Below, piece after piece: positions 33,870 through 61,802 of a stretch of 64,000 nucleotides of DNA (position 1 is its first letter; each line of letters starts with the position of its first letter). The stretch comes from Podarcis filfolensis (Eukaryota): assembly GCA_964270895.1 (NCBI GenBank), contig OZ185437.1; one strand, written 5' to 3'. The position numbers and the translations under genes are program-made. The notes beneath the pieces are model-generated. The model saw only the letters and a list, made by a program, of their open reading frames with translations, did not search any database and had not been told where the DNA came from.

Positions 33870-36750
33870 TACTCAGTATTACCCTTTGGTGTACATGGGA
33901 AAATGTGCTCTACCAGAATGTTTTGTTGACAGTTTTGAGCTTTATTTAGGTATTTGCAGCTATTCCCCCCACCCCCATCTGACCTGTGATCCTACAGATT
34001 GGGCATATTTCGGTTGGGGACTGACATAAGTGTTTATTCCTTGAGCTGGAAAAGAGAGGAGGAGCTGAGCTCCATAGTAAACCGTCTTTGTTTTCCTCAC
34101 TTTTTAGGTTGTTGGGTTGAGTGCCTTCTTCATGAGGCTTCAAATCTGAATCCAGGCTGGTAAGTTCTTCAGCACATCTGTTATAGGCTTAGCTGTGGGG
34201 ATTGCCTCATACTTAGGCATTGCACTGCTCCACATTTGACCTTCCTTCAGTGAGAGTCGGCCAAAGAGGCCTTACCCAATCCCCTTTATGAACGAGATGT
34301 ACATAAGAAGTCGTCATATATCTGGTCACTACTTACCCATCTAGTCCAGTTTAGCCTATTTGTTGAGGCTCCCCAGGGAGTCTCACTCGTGTCATCTGCT
34401 CTCTGGTCCTTTTACCTGGAGGTGATTCAGCCTGGGGCCTTTTGCATTCAAAACCATAGCTACTACTGAGCTATGATTCTTCCTACAATGAGAAATGTAG
34501 AGCGCTGAGGAAGCCCTTCTCAAGACTGACCCCAGATTATAGAATGTTACTTCCAGGAGGTCTCTTAAATGGTCAGCCGCCGCCTTGTTGTTTTTAGAAA
34601 ACAGCAAGTCATTTCTGTTTTAACTGGTTTTCAAGAATATACTAGGACATGTTAAATTTGCAGCCGGTTATATTTGCTCATTTTTGCGCTTGCTGTTATG
34701 ATTTAATTAATGGATAGTTTTTACAGCCTTCTTTGATTAGCAGGGTAGCATGTTTTAATTCAGTGGGTTCAATACTGGGGAGGAGGTAGCAAAAGGCATG
34801 CACTTTCACCCATGAGTCATCAGGTTACTAGAGGCTTTGACTGCTGCTGTCTGGAAGACGTGGTGCCTGCAAAACATTGTCATTGGTATTGTAGCTGCCC
34901 TGCGTTTACCTCCAGCTGTACAGATATGTTTTGACTTGTGTGTAATGGAATGTTGGAGGGAACCATGGGAGTAATGGGACAGTTCCAGGCAGTTTAAGCA
35001 CAAAGGTACTGTGTCTTCTTTACCCAAATTGTTATTGACTTGATAAGAACCCAGTGGCTCTACAGAGCAAAATGCCACAGAGAACCTGTGTTTGTTTCTT
35101 TGTCTTCGTTTACCTCTTGCTCTGCTCTAAGCAGGCATTACAATAGGCTGACTCTTGAGGGCTGCAAAACCTATGATGTTGGGTTTTTTATTGCACATTG
35201 GCTGAAGGAAATGCATTCCTTGTGGAGGAGGAAATGGACAAGAAACCGCTTGCTTGAAATGAAGGTGCCTTCAGCAAAGCATTCCCTGAAATATCATACT
35301 CTGGCCATGTCTGTGCTTCCTGCTCCTTTAGCAGGCCTCACCTTTTCTGCCCTGACTGACCTTTGTTGTGAGCATGTGCTTCTTGTCACTTTCCTGCAGT
35401 GCCAAGCCTGCTGTTTGCCCTTGATGTATGTCAGTAGTAGAAGTACTTGATGCTGTTACATCATTCTAGCGTAGTACTTAGAAACGGAAGCAAGCCAAGA
35501 GCTGTGCCGAATCCAGCACAGGCAAGTTCTGCATGCAGTCCTTGTCTGTAGAGGAGTATCATCTGTTGAGGGCGATCTAGTTGATGAGATTTCGCAGAGC
35601 AACATTCCCTGTATCCTTTTAGCTACCTTGGGAAATGCTGTTTGTGGGCCACATGGTTTGTGAACTTTGCAGGGGTTGTGAGGACTGAAAGGCCCGAGGA
35701 AAGCTGTTTGATTCCAGTTCCCTTGTATATCATAGAAGGATTTCATGGCCGAGCTTCCGTCAAGCCTGACTGCCTGATTTCTGGAAGGGTTTTGGACACT
35801 TGACTTGCATTTGTTGACAAGTTTATAGTCTTGGCCGGCAGCAGCAGGATCACTGCCCTTGGCTAATTTTTTACCTACACAGCAGAAGGCAGAGGCCTCT
35901 TGTCTGTGCTTTCAGGAACATTTGCATCAGTCCTGATCCCCCCCCCCCCATCCCCATTATAAATTGCCTGCTGCCTCTGGCGAATGCTGTCCTGGAACCT
36001 GACACAGGTAGGTGCTGTTCATGGCTCATAGCTTTTACAGAATGTAGGCCTGCGTTGTTAAGCCCTGATGCAGCAGCATAGCTCAGCAGCTTTCAGCAGG
36101 GTTCCTTCTGTCCTAGAAGTGCCTCCAAGCTTTGCCCTTACAGAGAGTGGCAGCGAAAGTGCCTCTCTTTGCCGTTTTATCCCTGACACACTTGGGAGTA
36201 ATTTGGCTTTAACTAATACAAGCACATAATTTCTCCAGCCTGTCGGCATGCTTAATGCCTGCCGTTCTCTCCCATATAGTCCCTCTTGGCAGCGACAGCA
36301 CAAGATCAATAGCTCCTGCCTGGCCTGTCATTCCCGCCTGCAAGGTTTTCAGTTTCCATATCGGAAACGGCCTTTCCTAAAGAGCCCAATCAATATGCCG
36401 CTCTGAGGCCTGTTCTCGTTTGCTATATATAATCTGGACACACACTGTATGTTAGTGTGTGTATGTGCATAACACAGAGAGAGAGAGAGGATGAGCCAAT
36501 CCTCTGCTCTTGCTGGCTGGGAGGACGCAGCTGTGCTTTTTCTTCTTCCCTCCTTTTTTACTACAGCTGCTTTCCAAGGCTCTGGCCTGCCTCTTTCCTC
36601 GGTTCTCTGGATGTTTGGCTGCTGTGGGACACAGGATATCTGACTGCCTTGTGGGAACGTATCTGGGCTGAATGGGGCATATGTGACTCTCTCTCTCTGC
36701 AATTTCTGCTCTCGGCAGGTGACCTATTGTGCAAGTCAAGCGAGGGGACA

Positions 36751-38208
36751 ATGACGAGCACTGCACCTTCCAAGAAGCCTTACCGCAAGGCTCCTCCGCA
36801 GCACCGCGAGATCCGTCACGAGCTGCCCATCCTGCGCGACGACCAAGATGGTGTGATTTTGGCGGAGCAGAGTCAGGTAACTGAAAGCCGGGCAGCTAAG
36901 GGCCTGGTTCCACTTCGTCAGCCGAAGGGGTTTAGTTACCCCAAGGCAGGCCAGCCCAAACAGCAGGTGGATGGGTATGAGGTTTGCAACGTTAACTTTT
37001 CTTCCTGGTCTCTGGAGTCGAGCAGCGACAAGGAGCTAGCAGGGTGCCGAGCAGAGCTGAACCTGAAGAGCCGGACTCTGTCGCCTGTGCTGCTTCACAG
37101 TGGGAAAACGGGAAGGCGGAGTGTGAGGCACTGTCGGCACCCTAGCCGTGGGCGGCTCAGTAAGTTCATGAGTCGAAGCGTAGAGACGGTAGTGGTTTCT
37201 GGGGACGAAGGCCGGAGGCCGACTTGCTCCTTCAAGAGTAGAAGCCTGGAGCGTTCCCTCATGTTCAAAGAGCCTGCTGAGATCTTAGCACCTAGGAAGT
37301 TCCATGTCCCATCGACCCACCTGCCCCTCAAGGGCATCTTGAAGCAGACAGACATGCTGGAAGTGCGGCCTGAGAGCCTGCGCAAATCTCGCTCGGTGGA
37401 GACCCTGGCCCGTGGCCGCCGCTCACGGAAGTACAGCGACCCTCAGCTGTGCCTGAGCAGGCACGACAAGCGCGGCTCCGAGCACAACAGCGGGAGCTGC
37501 TCCGACTCTGTCAGGCGGAAGGAGAAGATCACGGAGGAGAAGCTCCAGTTCTCCAAGTTCCTGGACGAGATCACCCACCGGGTGCTGAGCCCTGTCCACT
37601 TGCACTCCTTGGGGGAGGGCAGAGCAGGAGAAGGGAGCCAGGACTCCCCCACTTCTCCCAGGTGCTCCACACCAGAAGGGCAGAAGGAGAGCCAGCCTGA
37701 AGGCACCAGGAGGACCGCTGAGAAAAGCCCTCGGCTCACTAGGAGGAAAGCAGAGCGGAGGCGCGAGGGTCTCGATGTGGTACCTTGCCGTAAGAAGCTG
37801 CCAGAGGAGATGGAGAGGGCTTCCAGGCTAAGGAGGAAGCCCGTCTTGGTGAGGGCGGACAGCAAGGAGAAGTTCCTCTCCATGGAGAAGCGGGTGGTGG
37901 ATCTGTGTCAGTATCAGCTGCAGCACCTGGCAGAGCTGGGCTTGGCAAGGGTGTCTTCTGAGCAGCAGCATCTGCCTCCGTGGAAGACGCTGGGTCAGGA
38001 GGGAGGGAGGGATGAAGGGCAAGACCAGAGTGAATACCCACCGCGGCTCGTGTGGCTACAGCCCCTGGGTTGCAGAACTAGCCCGAGGCCAGTGCTGGAG
38101 CCGAGCTACTCGGGAAAAGGGTCCTTCTCCCCTCCCTCACGTTGGAGCCAGGAAGAGGGCAGTGCCTCACCCAGAGCCTCCCCTTCCTTCAGCTTAGCGC
38201 TAAACAAG
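36751..38208 (+). CDS. TJAP1: TJAP1 first coding exon (acceptor at 36718/36719, ATG 36751); short form ends 36876, long form ends 38208
   Basis: MTSTAPSKKPYRKAPPQHREIR matches the recalled human N-terminus MTSAAPAKKPYRKAPPEHRELR. Two phase-0 donors: CAG|GTAACT (36876) and AAG|GTAGGT (38208). Confidence is higher for 36751-36876 than for use of the long form. Confidence 0.85.
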
Positions 38209-39104
38209 GTAGGTGCTTAGTGAAGAGGGAGTGAGGGACAGATGTTTGTCTGCCAAGTTTTGTCTGTCGTAACTTAGAGCACCGGGATGGCAGATCTCCT
38301 TAAGTCTCGATAAAGTTTGACCAAAGGGGTTTTATCCCCAAATATTATCCACCCAACATGTTTCTTATTAGCTCATTCCCCGCTTGTGTTGATCCTTAAA
38401 ATGGGACCCTTAAAATGGGAAACTGAGCCCACATGCTTGAATACTGAATACGTCATACTTTCTGAATAGCCCATTGATTTTTCTTCCTTCCTTTTCGCAT
38501 CCAGGTTGCCCTGGGTACGCTTCTTTGGAGATGCTTACCTGTCGAGTGCCAGTATATGTGTTTGTGGCAGCTTACCTGTTTTGCTAAACTGCCTGGTAAA
38601 TTCCTCAGGCACCTTTGTATGAGTCACAGTTCTTGAGAAAATCTGCCATTCACTTCCATCCATCACAGAAAGAGGTTCTTAAGCTGAGTGTACCCTAATG
38701 AAAAGGCGTTTTGTCTTTGCCCAGATCTCTCTCCTGCCCTCTTATATCAGGCATTGCATGCTGGGAGATTGCCATTTGCCCCATACTGTGTAGTCTGATA
38801 GGGCAAATCTTGCTAGAGTCAGTACGTTCAGGACCACTGAGCGTCATAGGCTGGCATGATTGGGCACCTGCCAAGGCCCTTTGCCCTGGCAAGGGGTCCA
38901 TCATTGAAAGCCCCCTGGACCCAGAGACGCAGTGAGCAAGCAAAAAGTAGCAGAGACCAGGACAAACTGGTAGATAAGCAGGTGGTAGCAACAAAAATAG
39001 AAAGAATGGAAGCAAGCAGTTGCGGTTTGTTGAGGGTGTTTTGCCCAAGGGTCCTCTCCAAAATCTGAACTCAGCAGTATGTGTCAGTATTGTTTAGGGA
39101 TATT

Positions 39105-39350
39105 AAGTCCGTATGGTGTAGTGTTTGATTAGGTCTGGGAAGACCGGAGTTCAAATTCCTACAGAGGCACGAAGCTCACAGAATGACCTTCGACTGCTAA
39201 CACTCTCTAGGCCTAACCTACCTCAAAAGGCCTTTTTCTGAGGATAAATTGGGGGGGGCGGGGAGAGGCCCCGCATGCTCCCCTGAGCTCCTTGGAGGAA
39301 TAGCTGGTGGGGAGGGGGCCAGGAAATGTAATAAATAATTAAAAATAAAA
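39105..39350 (+). mobile_element. Old tRNA-derived SINE (Squam2-like)
   Basis: tggtgtagtg A-box, ggagttcaaattcc B-box, cctaacctacctca body and AT-rich tail. Confidence 0.6.
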
Positions 39351-39930
39351 CAATGGCATGTAACTTGAAGTGTCTTCCTATACATTGGGGGTTGTTTTAA
39401 GATTGTTGGTAGCGGTCTCATTTGTGTGGTGCTTTACCTATGTGTATGATGGCCTGAGCAATATAGAGTACAGGACAGTATGCAGTATTTGCTGGCCAGT
39501 GGGTATCCTGAATGCAGTGTGGATGCTCATGGGCAGTAAAAGAGAACAAAAAAAGTGGCTGGGAGTATCTCCCTCAGTCTGTTCATTAACGAAGGATCAT
39601 ATTCACCACAGAGCAGGTCTCCGGTTTGTACACTGTAATGCTGTCAATTTAAAGCTGTCTAGTGATTGAGATAATTTAGGCTGGTATTGTGCAGGATTGA
39701 ATCTTAACTGCCCTGAGACCTCTGGGCATAGGGTGGTATATAAATTCAGTAAGTAAAAAATAAATAAAATTAATCCCATCTGGGTGTGGTTGGACCAGAG
39801 CTCTTTGTATGAGAATTAGAGGGTGCTGTGGGTTATATCCATCTGGCACTTGTATGCTTCAGTTTGCCACTCTGAAAACTTGCCCATATTTTTCAGTGAG
39901 ATTCTTGCTTCTGTTTCCTTTTTTGCACAG

Positions 39931-39959
39931 GAGCCCTTGACGGATGCAGAAAGGATGAG
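39931..39959 (+). CDS. TJAP1: TJAP1 coding exon, 29 nt (EPLTDAERM)
   Basis: ttttgcacAG acceptor, GTAAGT donor; phase 0 in, phase 2 out; peptide matches human EPLTDAERM. Confidence 0.95.
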
Positions 39960-40489
39960 GTAAGTATCCTCGTCACTTTCGTTATGCAAATCTTTATTTT
40001 CCAGGCTACTACATTTATGCTCATTCTCCGAACTTTGGCTTTCCCTTCCTTTAAGGCTCTACACCAGGGCTGGGGCCTTTTGGGTTGGATGGACCAGATC
40101 TTCATCTTCCCCCACCCTGATGGGCCAAGCTTGGTAGGTGGGTGGGACCACCTACCTGCCAATCATCTGGTGTCATAGTGACACCAGGTGATTGATAGGG
40201 GGTGGTCCCGCCCACCTCTCAAAGCTGGCCCTTGGGGTGGGGGAGATACTGCCCAAGTGGGATTAAACGCATATCAGCTAAAATTAAAACCTGCATTCTG
40301 CAGCCATGTTTCTACCTGCCCTACCTGTTATCACACATTATGTCAAGCGTGGAGAAGGTGGGTTTGGTTTCAGGACCAGAAGGTGTCACCTGGCAGGTCA
40401 GGTTTATCTTGGCCTTTGGCACCTGAGATACTCAGGACCCACCCTATTATTGTGACTGAAATTTGGTTTTATTGGTTTTTAATACTGTA

Positions 40490-40731
40490 CAGTGGTACCT
40501 CAGGTTACATACGCTTCAGGTTACATACACTTCAGGTTACAGACTCCGCTAACCCAGAAATAGTGCTTCAGGTTAAGAACTTTGCTTCAGGATGAGAACA
40601 GAAATCGTGCTCTGGCGGTGCGGCAGCAGCAGGAGGCCCCATTAGCTAAAGTGGTGCTTCAGGTTAAGAACAGTTTCAGGTTAAGTACGGACCTCCAGAA
40701 CGAATTAAGTATTTAACCTGAGGTACCACTG
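40490..40731. mobile_element. Tc1/mariner-type MITE, family A
   Basis: TA|cagtggtacctcagg...cctgaggtaccactg|TA. Confidence 0.9.
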
Positions 40732-41887
40732 TACTGAATTTCAAATTTTTGTAACCCGCCCTGGTAATATATTTGATGATGGTGATAATTTGCAGGTCAG
40801 AGGTTCTCTGCTCTGTGCTCATCAGGAAGCGTTATCTCACAACCTTGATGGTGCAGTGGCTGAAAGGACGGTCCTGAAACTGACATGGCTGCCTCAGGCA
40901 TAGATGCCAAAGCTAGTGTAGGTGGAGACCCAGCTGTACAAGCACAAACAAAGGGTCCAAACTTTACATTAGGTTTTCAACTTGCTGTTCCAGCAGGAAG
41001 AGTGGATAGGCAATCATTCATTCCAACAGCAGGCATCTATTTTAATTTCTTGAAAACACGTTTTAAGCTCTATTGTTTGAATGTGATTTGCTGTGCTTGG
41101 GATATGTCCTTTGTGCAGTCTCTCACTATGAAAGTCGGATGTGTAAAAATATCTGCAAGGAGGCAGCAATTTTTTGGATTGCTTTTAAATCAGTGAAGAA
41201 CAATCCCAATACAGTAGTAGCAGAACTGTTGGGAGACTGTGCATGCAAGCAGATGTATGGATAGGGCAGCAGAAGACTTCTGTGCCAGTGAGCCGTTATG
41301 CAAACATAGGCTGTATCTTCCTCCATAGACTGATTCCACTCACTTGCTTGGAAACTGGGTCACTTTTCCTCTGTGAGGGTGGAGATGGGCCGATGTCGAC
41401 TGACCCGCCTCCCTGCATCCTTGCTAGATGTTTCATGGCAGCACGTAAATTATTGAGTGAGTCTCATCTTCCAGTGGAGGACACCTAAACTGCACAGCCC
41501 CATCTGGCTACTGTGTTTAGTACAGATACTGTAAACTGAGACGCTGCTGGCATGGATGAGTGGCCGGCTACTGAGAATAAGGCTCTCTGTCTCTGCTCTG
41601 GTGGCAATATGATCAACTGACATGACCTTTTGTTATCTACAGCAGATTCCCGTATGTGCTCAGGCCTCTGCTCAAAGTGGCTTGCTACTCATAAACAGAA
41701 TTTAGTGGCACAAGATCCAGAAAAGGCTTCCCTAGAACACCCTTGCTATTCCTGACCACCAGAATGCACCTTATTACCCATCTTTCCCAGTCTCTGCTGA
41801 TCGTCTTCTTCCTGGTGTGCAGATATGTCTCCAGAGTCGTCCTCCTGGAACTCAAAGGCACTGGCAGGAATCCAGTAGAGCTTAGGG

Positions 41888-42023
41888 CAGGCATAGGCAG
41901 CCTTTGGCCCTCCAGATGTTTTGGACTACAATTCCAACCATCCCTGACCACTGGTCCTGTTAGCTAGGGATCAAGGGAGTTGTAGGCCAAAGCATCTGGA
42001 GGGCCAAAGGTTGCCTATGCCTA
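41888..42023. mobile_element. Palindromic hAT-type MITE
   Basis: TIRs caggcataggcagcctttggccctccagatg / catctggagggccaaaggttgcctatgcct; 8-bp TSD gcttaggg / acttaggg. Confidence 0.85.
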
Positions 42024-42452
42024 ACTTAGGGGGATACCTGAAAACCTTTTTTCTTTAGTAAAATGTACTGTAATTCCTTGTTGGACATGAAAACTTAAGA
42101 GTGAATAAACTGGTTTTTTTTTTTGCTCATTCATGCATTTGAAGTTGCACTGGGTCTAGTACTGCGCATGCCTCAGCACTATGAAATGGAGGTTTGCAAA
42201 TGGGTTTTTAAAATTACTATTATGTTGGAAACCTGGGCTTTATTTCCTCTCTTGTGGTGAATGGTTGCTGGGGGCAGGGAAGATCTGTAAACTCATCCCG
42301 AGATTTTTTCACAACACAGTCATTTTCTTCAGATGTCTTTTCATGTCCTGTGTGCCGCTTTGCACCTGAACAGAGAAGGGGAGGGGTTGGCAGAACTGTC
42401 GGAGTGCGTCTTGCTGCAGCCCTCTTTCAAAAGTGAGGCTGTAAGTGTTGTA

Positions 42453-42696
42453 CAGTCGTACCATGGAATGGAATCCGTTCCGGAAGTCTGTTCAACTTCC
42501 AAAACGGTCAGAAACCAAAGCACAGCTTCTGATTCGCTGCAGGAAGCTCCTGTAGCCAATCAGAAGTCATGGGAGCCCTGTCGGACGTTCAGGTTCCAAA
42601 AAAAGTTTGAAAACCGGAACACTCACTTCTGGGTTTTGATTGTTTGGGAGCCGATTTGTTCGTGAACCAAGGTGTTCAACTTCCTAGGTATGACTG
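42453..42696. mobile_element. Tc1/mariner-type MITE, family C
   Basis: TA|cagtcgtacc...ggtatgactg|TA; shares internal sequence with 33667-33869. Confidence 0.82.
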
Positions 42697-42756
42697 TATG
42701 GAAGACTGCAGCACTTGTAGTTTTTATTCAGGATGTTGTTGCTTTGTTTGCATTAG

Positions 42757-42918
42757 GTTGTTGCAACATGAGAATGAGGAGCTGCGTCGGCGTCTGGCTT
42801 ATGTCACCAACAAAATGGAGGCAATGGAAAGGGAGTTGGAGTCTGGGCAAGACTATCTGGAGATGGAGCTGGGCCAGAATCGTGAGGAGCTAGAAAAATT
42901 CAAGGACAAGTTCCGTAG
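42757..42918 (+). CDS. TJAP1: TJAP1 coding exon, 162 nt (coiled coil LLQHENEELRRRL...LEKFKDKFR)
   Basis: cattAG acceptor, GTATGT donor, phase 2 to 2; matches human LLQEENEELRRRL...DKFKDKFRR. Confidence 0.96.
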
Positions 42919-44206: not shown

Positions 44207-44273
44207 GTTGCAGAACAGTTACACAGCCTCACAGAGAACCAATCAGGATTTGGAGGAGAAGCTGCACACCCTG
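44207..44273 (+). CDS. TJAP1: TJAP1 coding exon, 67 nt (LQNSYTASQRTNQDLEEKLHTL)
   Basis: ctatAG acceptor, GTAATT donor, phase 2 to 0. Confidence 0.96.
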
Positions 44274-44729: not shown

Positions 44730-44759
44730 GCCTCGCTCAGTCAAAGCTGGATTTTTGCA
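44730..44759 (+). CDS. TJAP1: TJAP1 30-nt cassette exon (ASLSQSWIFA)
   Basis: ctcAG acceptor, weak GTTGCG donor, phase 0 to 0; matches recalled human ASLSHSWIFA. Confidence 0.85.
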
Positions 44760-47337: not shown

Positions 47338-47445
47338 ATTAAAAAAGCCGAAATGGATCGCAAGACTCTTGATTGGGAGATTGTGGAGCTCACTAATAAA
47401 CTATTGGATGCCAAAACAACCATCAATAAACTGGAAGAGCTTAAT
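47338..47445 (+). CDS. TJAP1: TJAP1 coding exon, 108 nt (IKKAEMDRKTLDWEIVELTNKLLDAKTTINKLEELN)
   Basis: ctccAG acceptor, GTAAGT donor, phase 0 to 0. Confidence 0.97.
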
Positions 47446-48622: not shown

Positions 48623-48706
48623 GAGCGATATCGGCAGGACTGTAACCTGGCAGTGCAGCTCCTGAAGTGCAACAAGTCTCACTTTCGGAATCACAAGTTT
48701 GCTGAT
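48623..48706 (+). CDS. TJAP1: TJAP1 coding exon, 84 nt (ERYRQDCNLAVQLLKCNKSHFRNHKFAD)
   Basis: ttgacAG acceptor, GTGAGT donor, phase 0 to 0. Confidence 0.97.
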
Positions 48707-49806: not shown

Positions 49807-51126
49807 CTTCCCTATGAGCTGCAAGACATGGTCAACAAGCACCTGCATAGCACTCAGGAGACCTCTGGCCCTGGCCAGGAGGCCCCTCACACCTTGGCTC
49901 CATCGGACGTGGTGCCCACCTCGGTGATCGCCAGAGTCCTGGAGAAGCCGGAGTCCCTGGTGCTCAACTCGGCCAAATCCAGCAGCGGCAGCTGCTCCAT
50001 CGCCGAGGACGTCTTTGTGCACGTCGACATGAGCGGAGCTCCGTCCGACGCTTGCCCAAGCCCCGGGCAGCCCGGGAGCGAGGGGGCAGAGGGAGCAAGG
50101 CAGCAGAACGGGGGCTGCAAACCTCCAAGCGGCTTGGAGGGCCTCCCTGGCGAGGTGCCCACATTTGAGAAGCTCAGCCCGTACCCCACCCCGCCCCCGC
50201 CCCACCCCATGTACCCGGGGCGCAAGGTGATCGAGTTCTCTGAAGACAAGGTGCGGATCCCGAAGAACAGCCCCCTGCCCAACTGCACCTATGCCACGCG
50301 CCAAGCCATCTCCTTGAGCCTGGTCCAGGGGGAGGATGAGAACGGCGACAGGCAGCGCACCCTTCCCAGCAGCCCCGCCTCGGAGGGCCAGCGGTCGGCT
50401 TCCAGCTGCTCTTACCAGCCGTCCCCCAAGGTGAGCCGAGCTCACGGCTCCTCGCAGAGCAGCCCCTTCAGCAGCCCCCCGCAGGTGCCCAGCACCTTTG
50501 CCAGCTCGGCCAGCTCCGAGGAGGACCTGCTGGCCAACTGGCAGCGGATGTTTGTGGAGAAGGCTCCCCCAACCACGGAGCGGGTGCTGGTGAACCGTAC
50601 CTCCTTCAGCCGCGACACGGCCCAGGAGCTCCAGAAACGTTTCAGCCGCTCCATGCAGGAGCTAGGCCGTGCCGCCTCCACCTACTCGGACGGCGAGGAG
50701 TCGGTGCAGAGCTGCAGCTGGACGGTGAGCAGGGACTCCAGCACGGACACCGACAGCACCGAGTCCCGCGCTCGCCGGGGCCACCTCTCCTCCGACTACG
50801 GCACGGACTTCTCCCAGGACGAAGCCCACAAGCTGCTGCAAGGGGGTGGCGGAAAGGGGGCGGCAGAGCCCTCCAGCTCTTCCCCAGAGAAGCACAAAGA
50901 CTACGTAGACCTCGACTTGTCCGGGAGCCCGGCCGAAGAGCAGGAAACGCTGCTGCAGGGAAGCCAGGAAAACAGCCAAGAGGATAGCTCCGAGCAGAGC
51001 AGGGAGTGCAAGAGCAAGCCTCCTCCGGGCCGCCCCCACCGCAGCCCCAAGAGGATGGGGGTTCACCACCTCCATCGGAAAGACAGCCTGACGCAGGCCC
51101 AGGAGCAAGGCAACTTGCTCAACTGA
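49807..51126 (+). CDS. TJAP1: TJAP1 terminal coding exon (LPYELQDMVNKHL...HRKDSLTQAQEQGNLLN-stop)
   Basis: ccgtAG acceptor, phase 0; contains VVPTSVIARVLEKPESL, VIEFSEDKVRIP and RSPKRMGVHHLHRKDSLTQAQEQGNLLN, as in human TJAP1. Confidence 0.97.
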   Translation, partial: LPYELQDMVNKHLHSTQETSGPGQEAPHTLAPSDVVPTSVIARVLEKPESLVLNSAKSSSGSCSIAEDVFVHVDMSGAPSDACPSPGQPGSEGAEGARQQNGGCKPPSGLEGLPGEVPTFEKLSPYPTPPPPHPMYPGRKVIEFSEDKVRIPKNSPLPNCTYATRQAISLSLVQGEDENGDRQRTLPSSPASEGQRSASSCSYQPSPKVSRAHGSSQSSPFSSPPQVPSTFASSASSEEDLLANWQRMFVEKAPPTTERVLVNRTSFSRDTAQELQKRFSRSMQELGRAASTYSDGEESVQSCSWTVSRDSSTDTDSTESRARRGHLSSDYGTDFSQDEAHKLLQGGGGKGAAEPSSSSPEKHKDYVDLDLSGSPAEEQETLLQGSQENSQEDSSEQSRECKSKPPPGRPHRSPKRMGVHHLHRKDSLTQAQEQGNLLN

Positions 51127-58458: not shown

Positions 58459-58601
58459 AAATACCAGTACTGAAATTTTGTGACCTTCAATTTTTTGAGG
58501 GCCTGAATGTCATGGTTTCCCATGGTCAGCCTCCCCCTTCCAGCTTCACCTCCCCCCCCCATCTTCCTCTTCCTCCTCAATGGAGGCCCCAGCAGACTTA
58601 C

Positions 58602-58785
58602 TGCTCTGGCAGATCCAGTTGTTCTTCTCTCTTGCCATGACTTCACGAGTCTCCGTCTCGTCGTCTTCCTCACCCTCAGAAAGAAGGTCAGAGATCTGCT
58701 GTTGAAGTTCAGGGCTGATGTTGTTCTCTGCCAGGATCAGCGTCCGCAAAGCTGTCGGGTAGTTTTCCACCATATCCAGCAAGAT
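58602..58785 (-). CDS. LRRC73: LRRC73 coding exon, 184 nt (ILLDMVENYPTALRTLILAENNISPELQQQISDLLSEGEEDD...WICQS)
   Basis: gttcAG acceptor, GTAAGT donor, phase 0 to 1; matches human LLDMVENYPTALRSLVLAENSISPELQQQI. Confidence 0.95.
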
Positions 58786-59016
58786 CTGAACAGAACAAGA
58801 GTCGAGAGGCTGGTTGGTAAGCAACTCAGCTTAGAGGCAAGAGAACCAAGGAAGAAGAGTGCAAAGGGGCTCCAGTCTTCCTGACAAACTGCCCCTGAGA
58901 CAGGGCATTTGGGGAAAGAGTGCATTTGGGGAAGATAAAAGCAGACGAAACTAGTCTGCCCACTTCCATGACTTAGAAGGCGAATGGAAGGCGGCAAAGG
59001 ACCATGTCCTCCTTAC

Positions 59017-60705: not shown

Positions 60706-61525
60706 CTATTATGGTAGCCTGTGTGCCACCCTCATGTTGCATTCCCAAAGGCAAGTGAGGAGGAGCCCAGCTTTGAGAAGGAGGTGCGAGGGCTCTGGCA
60801 AGGTCCAAAACCCTCCCACCTCCTTCCCAAAGCTGGGAAAGTGCTAACTAGGCTTTAGGATGGGGCGGGGGCACAAGACCCTAGGACTCTCTCAGAGCCC
60901 TCATGCCTCCTTCCCAAAGCCCAATGCCTTTGAGAGGGCGCCCCCCCCATCAGCTCAGCACCCAGTGTGTGCACTTCTGACCCAGCCCTAAATCCGCCCG
61001 ACAGGTGTTTGGTGATTTGATTCCACCATATTGGTTTTCTGTTATCAGAAACTAATCGCTGCTGATTAGTTTCAAGCTTGATTCAAGGTGCTAGGGTTGG
61101 TTTTAAAAACCCTTAAACAGCTTTGGACCTAGGAGCTGCCTCAACCTCAAGAGGCGAGGCTGCTTTAAACCAGGGTCAGGACCTTCTCTGCTTTGGCACC
61201 CAACTATGTGGAATGCTTTGCCAAGTAAGATGTGCTGGGCCCCGTCATAATACTGCACTTGCAGGCATAGCTTTTGACTGATTCATTCATTTTCTGGTAG
61301 CCTAGCATGATGGTTGTTTTGGAAACGTTAAATTAGCTTTGTGTTTATTTTCAGAGAGTGTGTGTAATATTGGAATGGATACTTGTTTCACAGTGTTTTG
61401 TTATCTGCTCTGTTTGCCGCCTCAAGAAATTAAAAAAAATACATAAAATAATGAAGAGAAAGGGCCGAGCTGGATTGTGATTGGACTTGTCCTAGATGTG
61501 GGCTCTTTAACTATCATTAACCAAG

Positions 61526-61655
61526 NNNNNNNNNNNNNNNNNNNNNNNNNNNNNNNNNNNNNNNNNNNNNNNNNNNNNNNNNNNNNNNNNNNNNNNNNNN
61601 NNNNNNNNNNNNNNNNNNNNNNNNNNNNNNNNNNNNNNNNNNNNNNNNNNNNNNN
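61526..61655. other. Assembly gap (130 N)
   Basis: Run of N directly visible. Confidence 0.99.
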
Positions 61656-61679
61656 GCACGATATCCATGCTCCTCTCAC

Positions 61680-61802
61680 CCAGTGGGTTGTAGTCCAAGT
61701 TCAACACTCGCACCTGGGAACTATGAGCCACTGCAATAGCCAGGCGCCCCCATCCTTTGGCTGTGATGCCAGGGTTAGCACTGAGAGTCAACTCCTTCAA
61801 AC
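61680..61802 (-). CDS. LRRC73: LRRC73 coding exon, 123 nt (LKELTLSANPGITAKGWGRLAIAVAHSSQVRVLNLDYNPL)
   Basis: ttAG acceptor, GTGAGA donor, phase 1 to 1; near-identical to recalled human sequence. Confidence 0.96.

Follow-up and report, generated by a model that had tools for sequence, protein, structure and literature searches.

A 64,000-nt stretch of Podarcis filfolensis DNA (the window) contains the gene for TJAP1, a protein whose function has been described as 'essentially unknown' (PMC10820826). Its first coding exon raises a question: the reading frame continues for hundreds of codons beyond the splice donor that yields the short form of the protein. Is this continuation a genuine part of TJAP1, how could it enter the product, and what might it do there?

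An open frame beyond the proximal donor of TJAP1

We rebuilt the TJAP1 gene in the window from tblastn matches of orthologous proteins (P0064 and P0102) combined with splice sites. The two proteins matched every TJAP1 exon. The gene has the features of a TJAP1 (Pilt) orthologue: an N-terminal KPYRKAPP..HRE peptide, a BEGAIN-type coiled coil and a C-terminal Pilt domain, with colinear exons. Among Pfam families, Pilt (PF15453) matches the orthologue P0064 and PF27583 (BEGAIN_coil) is found on the homologous exon. The main elements are as follows.

36751..36876, plus strand: constitutive first TJAP1 coding segment, 42 aa, containing KKPYRKAPPQHREIR, which corresponds to the human peptide bound by the Mint PTB domain (tblastn; dN/dS 0.00-0.08)
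36874..36882, plus strand: proximal phase-0 donor CAG/GTAACT, cut after 36876, giving the short isoform (junction 36876 to 39931 in sister-species RNA sets X1, X2 and X23)
36877..38208, plus strand: alternatively included 444-codon in-frame extension (open frame, turtle orthologue, dN/dS, sister-species divergence)
38206..38214, plus strand: distal phase-0 donor AAG/GTAGGT, cut after 38208 (sequence conservation with five sauropsid contigs ends here; ...LALNK is followed directly by EPLTDAERM in RefSeq models)
39931..39959, plus strand: exon 2, 29 nt, EPLTDAERM plus AG (junctions 36876 to 39931 and 39959 to 42757 in RNA)
42757..42918, plus strand: exon 3, start of the BEGAIN-type coiled coil (tblastn; PF27583 = BEGAIN_coil)
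44730..44759, plus strand: 10-aa cassette exon ASLSQSWIFA, 30 nt, between coiled-coil exons (in Aquila isoform X1)
49807..51126, plus strand: last coding exon, Pilt domain (tblastn; Pfam Pilt matches orthologue P0064)

From the ATG at 36751, frame 0 is free of stops across the proximal donor and up to 38208, so that 444 codons (1332 nt, 36877-38208) lie between two phase-0 donors; we refer to them as the extension. An earlier reading made from the letters alone (the sequence-only reading) had claimed a 1332-nt open frame past the proximal donor, with CpG- and GC3-rich codons and a second phase-0 donor at 38208 in frame with the EPLTDAERM exon. All of this was borne out: no stop interrupts frame 0 through 38208, the donor reads AAG/GTAGGT with exon 39931-39959 in phase, GC3 is 0.72, and the CpG observed/expected ratio is 0.51 versus 0.25 in each flank. 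A GC content of 0.58-0.63 is confined to 36700-38200, while the surroundings have 0.42-0.50. The motifs named in that reading, SRSVET (twice), PLKGILKQ and KEKITEEKLQFSKFLDEITHRVLSPVHLHSL, are all present in the extension.

Exons 36751-36876 or 36751-38208, 39931-39959, 42757-42918, 44207-44273, (44730-44759), 47338-47445, 48623-48706 and 49807-51126 were concatenated. With the 10-aa cassette the products are 641 aa (short) and 1085 aa (long), and without it 631 and 1075 aa, which reproduces exactly the earlier exon sums of 641/1085 aa, each 10 aa less when the cassette is skipped. Splicing of exon 2 to 42757 continues the protein as ...RLLQHENEEL. The cassette at 44730-44759 is read through in the Naja model and accounts for the 10-aa-shorter variants.

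An open frame in GC-rich DNA could be a product of chance, and the high GC content of the extension speaks for this, as does nothing else. At the extension's own base composition, the probability of an open 444-codon frame is P ~2e-7, and the other two frames contain 16 (+1) and 19 (+2) stops. Together with 42 homologues at E < 1e-3 and dN/dS well under 1 (see below), these figures have already refuted a chance origin, to which we assign a practically negligible probability.

The extension is conserved from sharks to birds

Homologues in other vertebrates, which the sequence-only reading had proposed to look for, were readily found: when the 444-aa extension was searched with HMMER against 1.84 billion representative proteins, 42 matches had E < 1e-3. 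Agamid and iguanian lizards provide the sequences closest to the window extension in the alignment (84%, 77% and 75%). At the nucleotide level, five contigs with a homologous ORF were compared: one from an agamid (L001), one probably crocodilian (L002) and three from birds (L003, L005 and L007). The protein alignment of the window with these sauropsid contigs is continuous from M1 to ...SLALNK and is lost directly past the distal GT.

Pairwise Nei-Gojobori dN/dS was calculated for seven sauropsid comparisons. It is 0.16-0.42 for the extension, 0.09-0.42 for its core and 0.00-0.08 for the N-terminal 42 codons. The window and the agamid yield 0.16 for the whole extension and 0.09 for the core. 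The first 96 extension codons, located upstream of every internal start in annotated models, have values of 0.12-0.39.

Both phase-0 donors show nucleotide identity across sauropsids. At the proximal donor, six sauropsid sequences agree in every base of CAG GTA AC, and Q-V is kept at this position in fish, shark and the TJAP1-like paralogue. A perfect donor-like hexamer, GTAAGT, at 37160-37165 is common to the window and the agamid, and its use would shift the frame. We rejected it as an in-frame donor, since it is in phase 1 (codons AGT AAG) and is absent in birds and in the crocodilian-like sequence.

A second line of evidence came from Logan RNA contigs of a sister species diverged by ~1%. 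The extension differs at 7 of 1111 positions (0.6%), as opposed to 30 of 840 (3.6%) in the remaining part of intron 1 (Fisher p = 2e-6). Indels in the extension are in-frame (+3 and -12), while those in the intron are -11, -4, -1 and -2. The sole exception to an intact frame is the agamid contig, in which two 1-nt deletions past ~37950 break the distal part. This break is downstream of the inner donor and therefore fits the annotated Pogona vitticeps isoform X2, which leaves the extension at that donor. The comparative checks named along with the original claim thus leave it standing: dN/dS of 0.16-0.42 is not near 1, and the frame is kept except in the distal agamid part. Judged by these sequence comparisons, the extension at 36877-38208 is genuine coding sequence under purifying selection, conserved from sharks to birds.

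Long TJAP1 isoforms are annotated in other non-mammalian vertebrates

The sequence-only reading had called the extension hidden and unannotated. This part of the claim did not hold, as RefSeq and GenBank already contain long TJAP1 isoforms that include it. We traced them by cluster look-ups and word-seeded searches. The closest in structure is TJAP1 isoform X1 of the turtle Dermochelys coriacea (P0064, 1067 aa), in which M1, the extension and EPLTDAERM follow one another and which is 75% identical over residues 1-479. It shares with the 1075/1085-aa product of the window the N-terminal 42 aa, the extension, the ...SLALNK/EPLTDAERM junction, the coiled coil and the Pilt domain; it differs in being a computed model from another reptile order. 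The window has the properties of such X1-type RefSeq isoforms, namely an uninterrupted frame between the proximal and distal phase-0 donors that is homologous to annotated long isoforms and is under purifying selection.

Further reptile models bearing the extension are those of Lepidochelys kempii (X2), Anolis sagrei (X2), Sceloporus undulatus, Pogona vitticeps (X2), Gekko kuhli and Naja naja. Bird models come from Aquila chrysaetos (X1 and X3), Nyctibius grandis (X1), Theristicus, Amazona and Willisornis. Frogs are represented by Engystomops pustulosus (X2), and sharks by Chiloscyllium punctatum and C. plagiosum (X1/X2). The conserved islands described below are common to the isoforms of Aquila, Nyctibius, Anolis, Sceloporus, Pogona, Engystomops and Chiloscyllium and to a bird isoform X2 of 684 aa, and all of these but Pogona X2 share the distal donor context. 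They differ from the long product of the window in that most have their start codon at an internal Met, Pogona X2 leaves the extension at a third in-frame donor homologous to window 37848/37849, and the bird isoform X2 (110 sequences in its 90% cluster) is spliced from the proximal donor to a late acceptor, so that the last ~54 codons alone, ending ...LALNK, are included as a cassette.

Human TJAP1 has 557 aa. Mammalian TJAP1/Pilt shares with the window the N-terminal peptide, the micro-exon, the coiled coil and the Pilt domain, but the extension was not found in any mammalian protein in the HMMER search, the word-seeded searches or the named clusters. The earlier claim that mammalian TJAP1 lacks this segment therefore agrees with every protein search, and the absence from protein databases suggests that the extension was lost in mammals. 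In the human protein, the N-terminal peptide 9-22 binds the Mint PTB domain (PMC10820826).

We found no description of a long TJAP1 isoform in the most relevant TJAP1 literature. Because gene annotation of turtles, birds, lizards, frogs and sharks includes the extension in long TJAP1 isoforms, it does not count as hidden; known as a gene model, it is uncharacterised as a protein module. The annotation value of our analysis is confirmatory: TJAP1 of the window can encode the long isoforms that RefSeq lists for other non-mammalian vertebrates.

RNA evidence for TJAP1 splicing

RNA of the ~1% diverged sister species was examined over 36811-42810 in two Logan contig sets and two raw-read runs. The contigs contain the junctions 36876 to 39931 and 39959 to 42757 at depths of 69.8 and 17.7, and the short form is the sole TJAP1 form seen in the sampled RNA. 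Raw reads on the short junction number 2 in one run and 0 in the other, so thin a sample that an isoform of low abundance or restricted to certain tissues could have been missed. The junction 38208 to 39931 is not listed in any of these four runs, where raw-read depth is very low, and no database ORF spans LALNK/EPLTDAERM under a length filter of 100-317 aa. Contigs cover the extension at a depth of ~2-4, equal to that of the remaining intron 1, versus 70 and 18 for the spliced contig, and one contig passes 38208 unspliced into the intron. A contig joint from 38104 to 41975 in X1 (depth 66) lacks splice-site context and was judged to be a spurious short match to an abundant repeat at ~41.9 kb; it explains the depth of 8.4 in that bin.

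A bird RNA contig (L007:1-3534, SRR20314581) is informative about the 5′ part of the gene. It joins a spliced 5′UTR exon to M1 and the contiguous extension, with exons 2, 3 and 4 spliced. RNA molecules carrying both M1 and the extension thus exist. The same contig retains the whole of intron 1 (the extension and the distal 1.7 kb), leaving the distal donor unused, which suggests that TJAP1 intron 1 is slowly removed or detained in birds.

Given that no spliced-long junction appears in the RNA and ORF data, support for a spliced long form comes from the conservation that ends at a conserved donor and from the RefSeq models. The latter predict the long form in >10 species. The long form may be made through the 38208 donor in the P. 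filfolensis lineage as well, although the four sister-species runs gave the short junction only, with intron-level cover of the extension.

The same RNA pattern would be expected if, in the lizard lineage, the extension were no more than intron 1 sequence that is retained or spliced out slowly, and its frame an inherited relic from which a functional long protein is no longer made. Retention of intron 1 in the bird contig and the two 1-nt deletions that break the distal agamid frame after window position 37950 agree with such a scenario as well. Yet a relic would not be expected to diverge between sister species five- to six-fold less than the adjacent intron with indels in-frame only, or to have a window-agamid dN/dS of 0.16 overall and 0.09 in the core. 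Besides, all 444 codons are intact in the window, and the agamid break is downstream of the inner donor used by the Pogona model. We consider this scenario improbable.

Isoform scheme and the start of the long form

We consider it very likely that the extension is a genuine, ancient and alternatively included part of the first TJAP1 coding exon, which would be handled as follows. Splicing at the proximal donor (after 36876) would drop the extension along with intron 1 and yield the short product of 631/641 aa. When the proximal donor is skipped and the distal donor (after 38208) is used, the extension would be kept in frame, and an insert of up to 444 mostly disordered residues would separate the N-terminal Mint-binding peptide from the coiled coil. 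In some lineages, the inner donor (after 37848) would be used instead, or the last ~50 codons would be included alone as a cassette. The elements of the extension relevant to these variants are listed below.

37168..37170, plus strand: first in-frame ATG within the extension (MSRSVET...), putative start (matches the start of the Sceloporus, Pogona and Lepidochelys RefSeq long models)
37846..37854, plus strand: putative inner phase-0 donor-like site TTG/GTGAGG, cut after 37848 (homologous to the donor of Pogona vitticeps isoform X2; would give 965/955 aa)
38062..38208, plus strand: distal 49 codons after a putative phase-0 acceptor CTACAG/, ending SFSLALNK, which is kept from frogs to birds (counterpart of the bird isoform X2 cassette exon)

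The switch between two 5′ splice sites, as put forward in the sequence-only reading, captures part of this picture: a constrained segment does lie between two phase-0 donors kept across vertebrates, but splicing is more complex, with an inner donor in Pogona, a cassette in birds and internal starts.

The exact 5′ end of the long form is a matter we infer, and the main rival to a start at M1 is a start inside the extension. The long form could begin at an internal TSS or with an upstream non-coding exon joined to an inner acceptor (e.g. 37017/37018) and be translated from ATG 37168 into ~936/946 aa. Such a protein would lack the Mint-binding N-terminus, and the two forms would differ by the choice of first exon or promoter and not by a 5′ splice-site switch. 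Most evidence-based long models start at an internal Met and hence are without the N-terminal 42 aa: they begin MGQRSGK... in Aquila, Nyctibius and Theristicus, MGRRNVK... in Anolis sagrei, and MSRSVET... in Sceloporus, Pogona and Lepidochelys (homologous to ATG 37168), with comparable starts in Engystomops and the two Chiloscyllium species. A pyrimidine-rich phase-0 site, ...CTGGAG/, is conserved at 37017/37018, and the CpG observed/expected ratio of the extension, twice that of its flanks, points in the same direction. Against these observations, Dermochelys X1 runs from M1 straight into the extension, and the bird contig L007 joins a spliced 5′UTR exon, M1 and the whole extension. The first 96 extension codons are also constrained (dN/dS 0.12-0.39), and internal starts in models can arise from 5′-incomplete transcript support. 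An internal start is thus possible, if on the unlikely side, and we keep M1 as the preferred start of the long form.

A TJAP1-like paralogue contains the same module

The extension also matches a TJAP1-like paralogue, annotated as 'uncharacterized protein LOC...' (P0060, P0023, P0080 and P0081), in Sphaerodactylus, Mauremys, Oryzias, Scleropages and Alosa. The paralogue has the same order of elements: an R-S-L-x-F island, KGILK, LRKAKS-x-E and an EEKL-x-FS-x-FL-x-EIT helix, followed by a coiled coil, and it keeps Q-V at the position of the proximal donor. It differs in being a separate gene with no Pilt Pfam match and ~25-30% identity to TJAP1. No mammalian member was seen among the protein matches. 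Since the module is found in both TJAP1 and the TJAP1-like gene of geckos, turtles and teleosts, it predates their duplication.

Predicted structure and motifs of the insert

AlphaFold2 with a 42-row alignment predicted no globular domain (mean pLDDT 51). Two helices are confident (residues 250-287 and 371-403), and the rest has pLDDT < 50. An alignment of 42 orthologues and paralogues (A1) revealed the following elements.

37234..37296, plus strand: conserved island KSRSLERSLMFKEPAEILAPR with an RVxF-like R-S-L-x-F, off consensus (A1)
37321..37347, plus strand: conserved island LPLKGILKQ, in which P, K, I, L and K show little or no variation (A1)
37378..37407, plus strand: conserved island LRKSRSVETL (L-R-K-x-[KR]-S-x-E-x-L), candidate basophilic phosphorylation site; S215 and E217 nearly invariant (A1)
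37498..37611, plus strand: predicted helix 1, residues 250-287, pLDDT 81-96, holding EEKLQFSKFLDEITHRVLSPVHLHSLG, the most conserved block (AlphaFold2; F267, F270, L271, E273 and P281 invariant in A1)
37861..37959, plus strand: predicted helix 2, residues 371-403, pLDDT up to 92 (AlphaFold2)

Across A1, the first island reads KSRSLERSL-x-FKE-x-AE-x-L-x-PR, the second LP-x-KGILKQ, with K, I, L and K invariant or nearly so, and the third LRKS[KR]S-x-E-x-L. The fourth, with six invariant residues, is the helix EEKL-x-FS-x-FLDEIT-x-RVLSP-x-x-L-x-SLG. Tetrapods carry an additional distal S/P-rich block ending in NK. The earlier description of the segment as disordered with ordered-looking islands thus finds a match in predicted disorder, two predicted helices and conserved islands at the places named.

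Pfam detected no family, IPP-2 included, on the 486-aa product at E <= 1. PF27583, seen on homologues, was considered as a domain of the extension and rejected, as it corresponds to the coiled coil (BEGAIN_coil). A feature search of the core in the ESM Atlas provided no lead (best score 0.82, unrelated disordered proteins). A reading of FLDEIT as a PP2A-B56 LxxIxE motif was likewise rejected, because position 6 is not Glu.

The second island resembles inhibitor-2 (PPP1R2), where the corresponding context matches P-[IL]-K-G-I-L-K-[NQ]: the insert has the identical pentapeptide KGILK in a similar context. In inhibitor-2, KGILK is the N-terminal PP1 contact (PMC3735429). The two proteins differ in that the TJAP1 insert shows no overall homology to inhibitor-2 (no Pfam IPP-2 match) and has neither a canonical RVxF nor a HYNE motif. 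The insert does conform to the SILK-type pattern [GS]-I-L-[KR], with GILK invariant or nearly so in 42 sequences. The RVxF consensus is [KR]-x(0,1)-[VI]-{P}-[FW], and this motif is usually C-terminal to SILK in PP1-interacting proteins. Both RVxF-like sites of the insert, R-S-L-x-F and K-L-x-F, have Leu at the V/I position, the former being N-terminal to GILK and the latter inside a confidently predicted helix. Owing to this Leu and the odd placement, PP1 recruitment is a hypothesis and not a finding, and we regard recruitment through KGILK as rather doubtful. The neighbouring LRKSRSVETL site resembles the consensus of basophilic kinases; were PP1 the partner bound by the inhibitor-2-like KGILK, this candidate phosphosite could serve as a switch.

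Most defensibly, the insert may be seen as a disordered docking and regulatory module, flanked by the Mint-binding peptide on one side and by the dimerising coiled coil on the other. Such a platform for docking and regulation would offer four short linear motifs and two amphipathic helices, older than the split between sharks and bony vertebrates. A more specific proposal, in which the insert is an ancestral vertebrate regulatory module of TJAP1 and its TJAP1-like paralogue, absent from mammalian proteins, that recruits PP1 through KGILK under control of an L-R-K-x-[KR]-S phosphosite, is unlikely to be correct as a whole. If it were true, a PP1-recruiting module would give non-mammalian TJAP1 a switchable signalling role at the Golgi or at junctions.

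To our knowledge, all TJAP1 experiments were done on the mammalian protein, without the 444-residue module. The module was kept under selection for > 400 million years and is common to the paralogue; we found no Pfam family and no paper for it. Its four invariant motifs, including the KGILK identical to a PP1 contact, are handles on TJAP1 function and on the presumed loss in mammals.

Other elements in the window

Three stretches of TJAP1 intron 2 (40411-40810, 41811-42010 and 42411-42610) have a very high summed RNA depth (up to ~176,000 word depth, hundreds of raw reads). They contain many variant positions, and loose ends occur at the fixed borders 40487/40488 and 40733/40734. In these respects they resemble interspersed (SINE-like) repeats that are abundant and transcribed at many loci.

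Downstream of TJAP1, ORF translation revealed leucine-rich-repeat-like sequences on the opposite strand.

58546-58824 and 61507-61800, minus strand: leucine-rich-repeat-like ORFs (...LNLDYNPLGE..., ...LILAENNISPELQQQ...)

One of these ORFs is broken by a masked or N stretch at ~61530-61680. Both ORFs probably represent exons of an LRR gene next to TJAP1.
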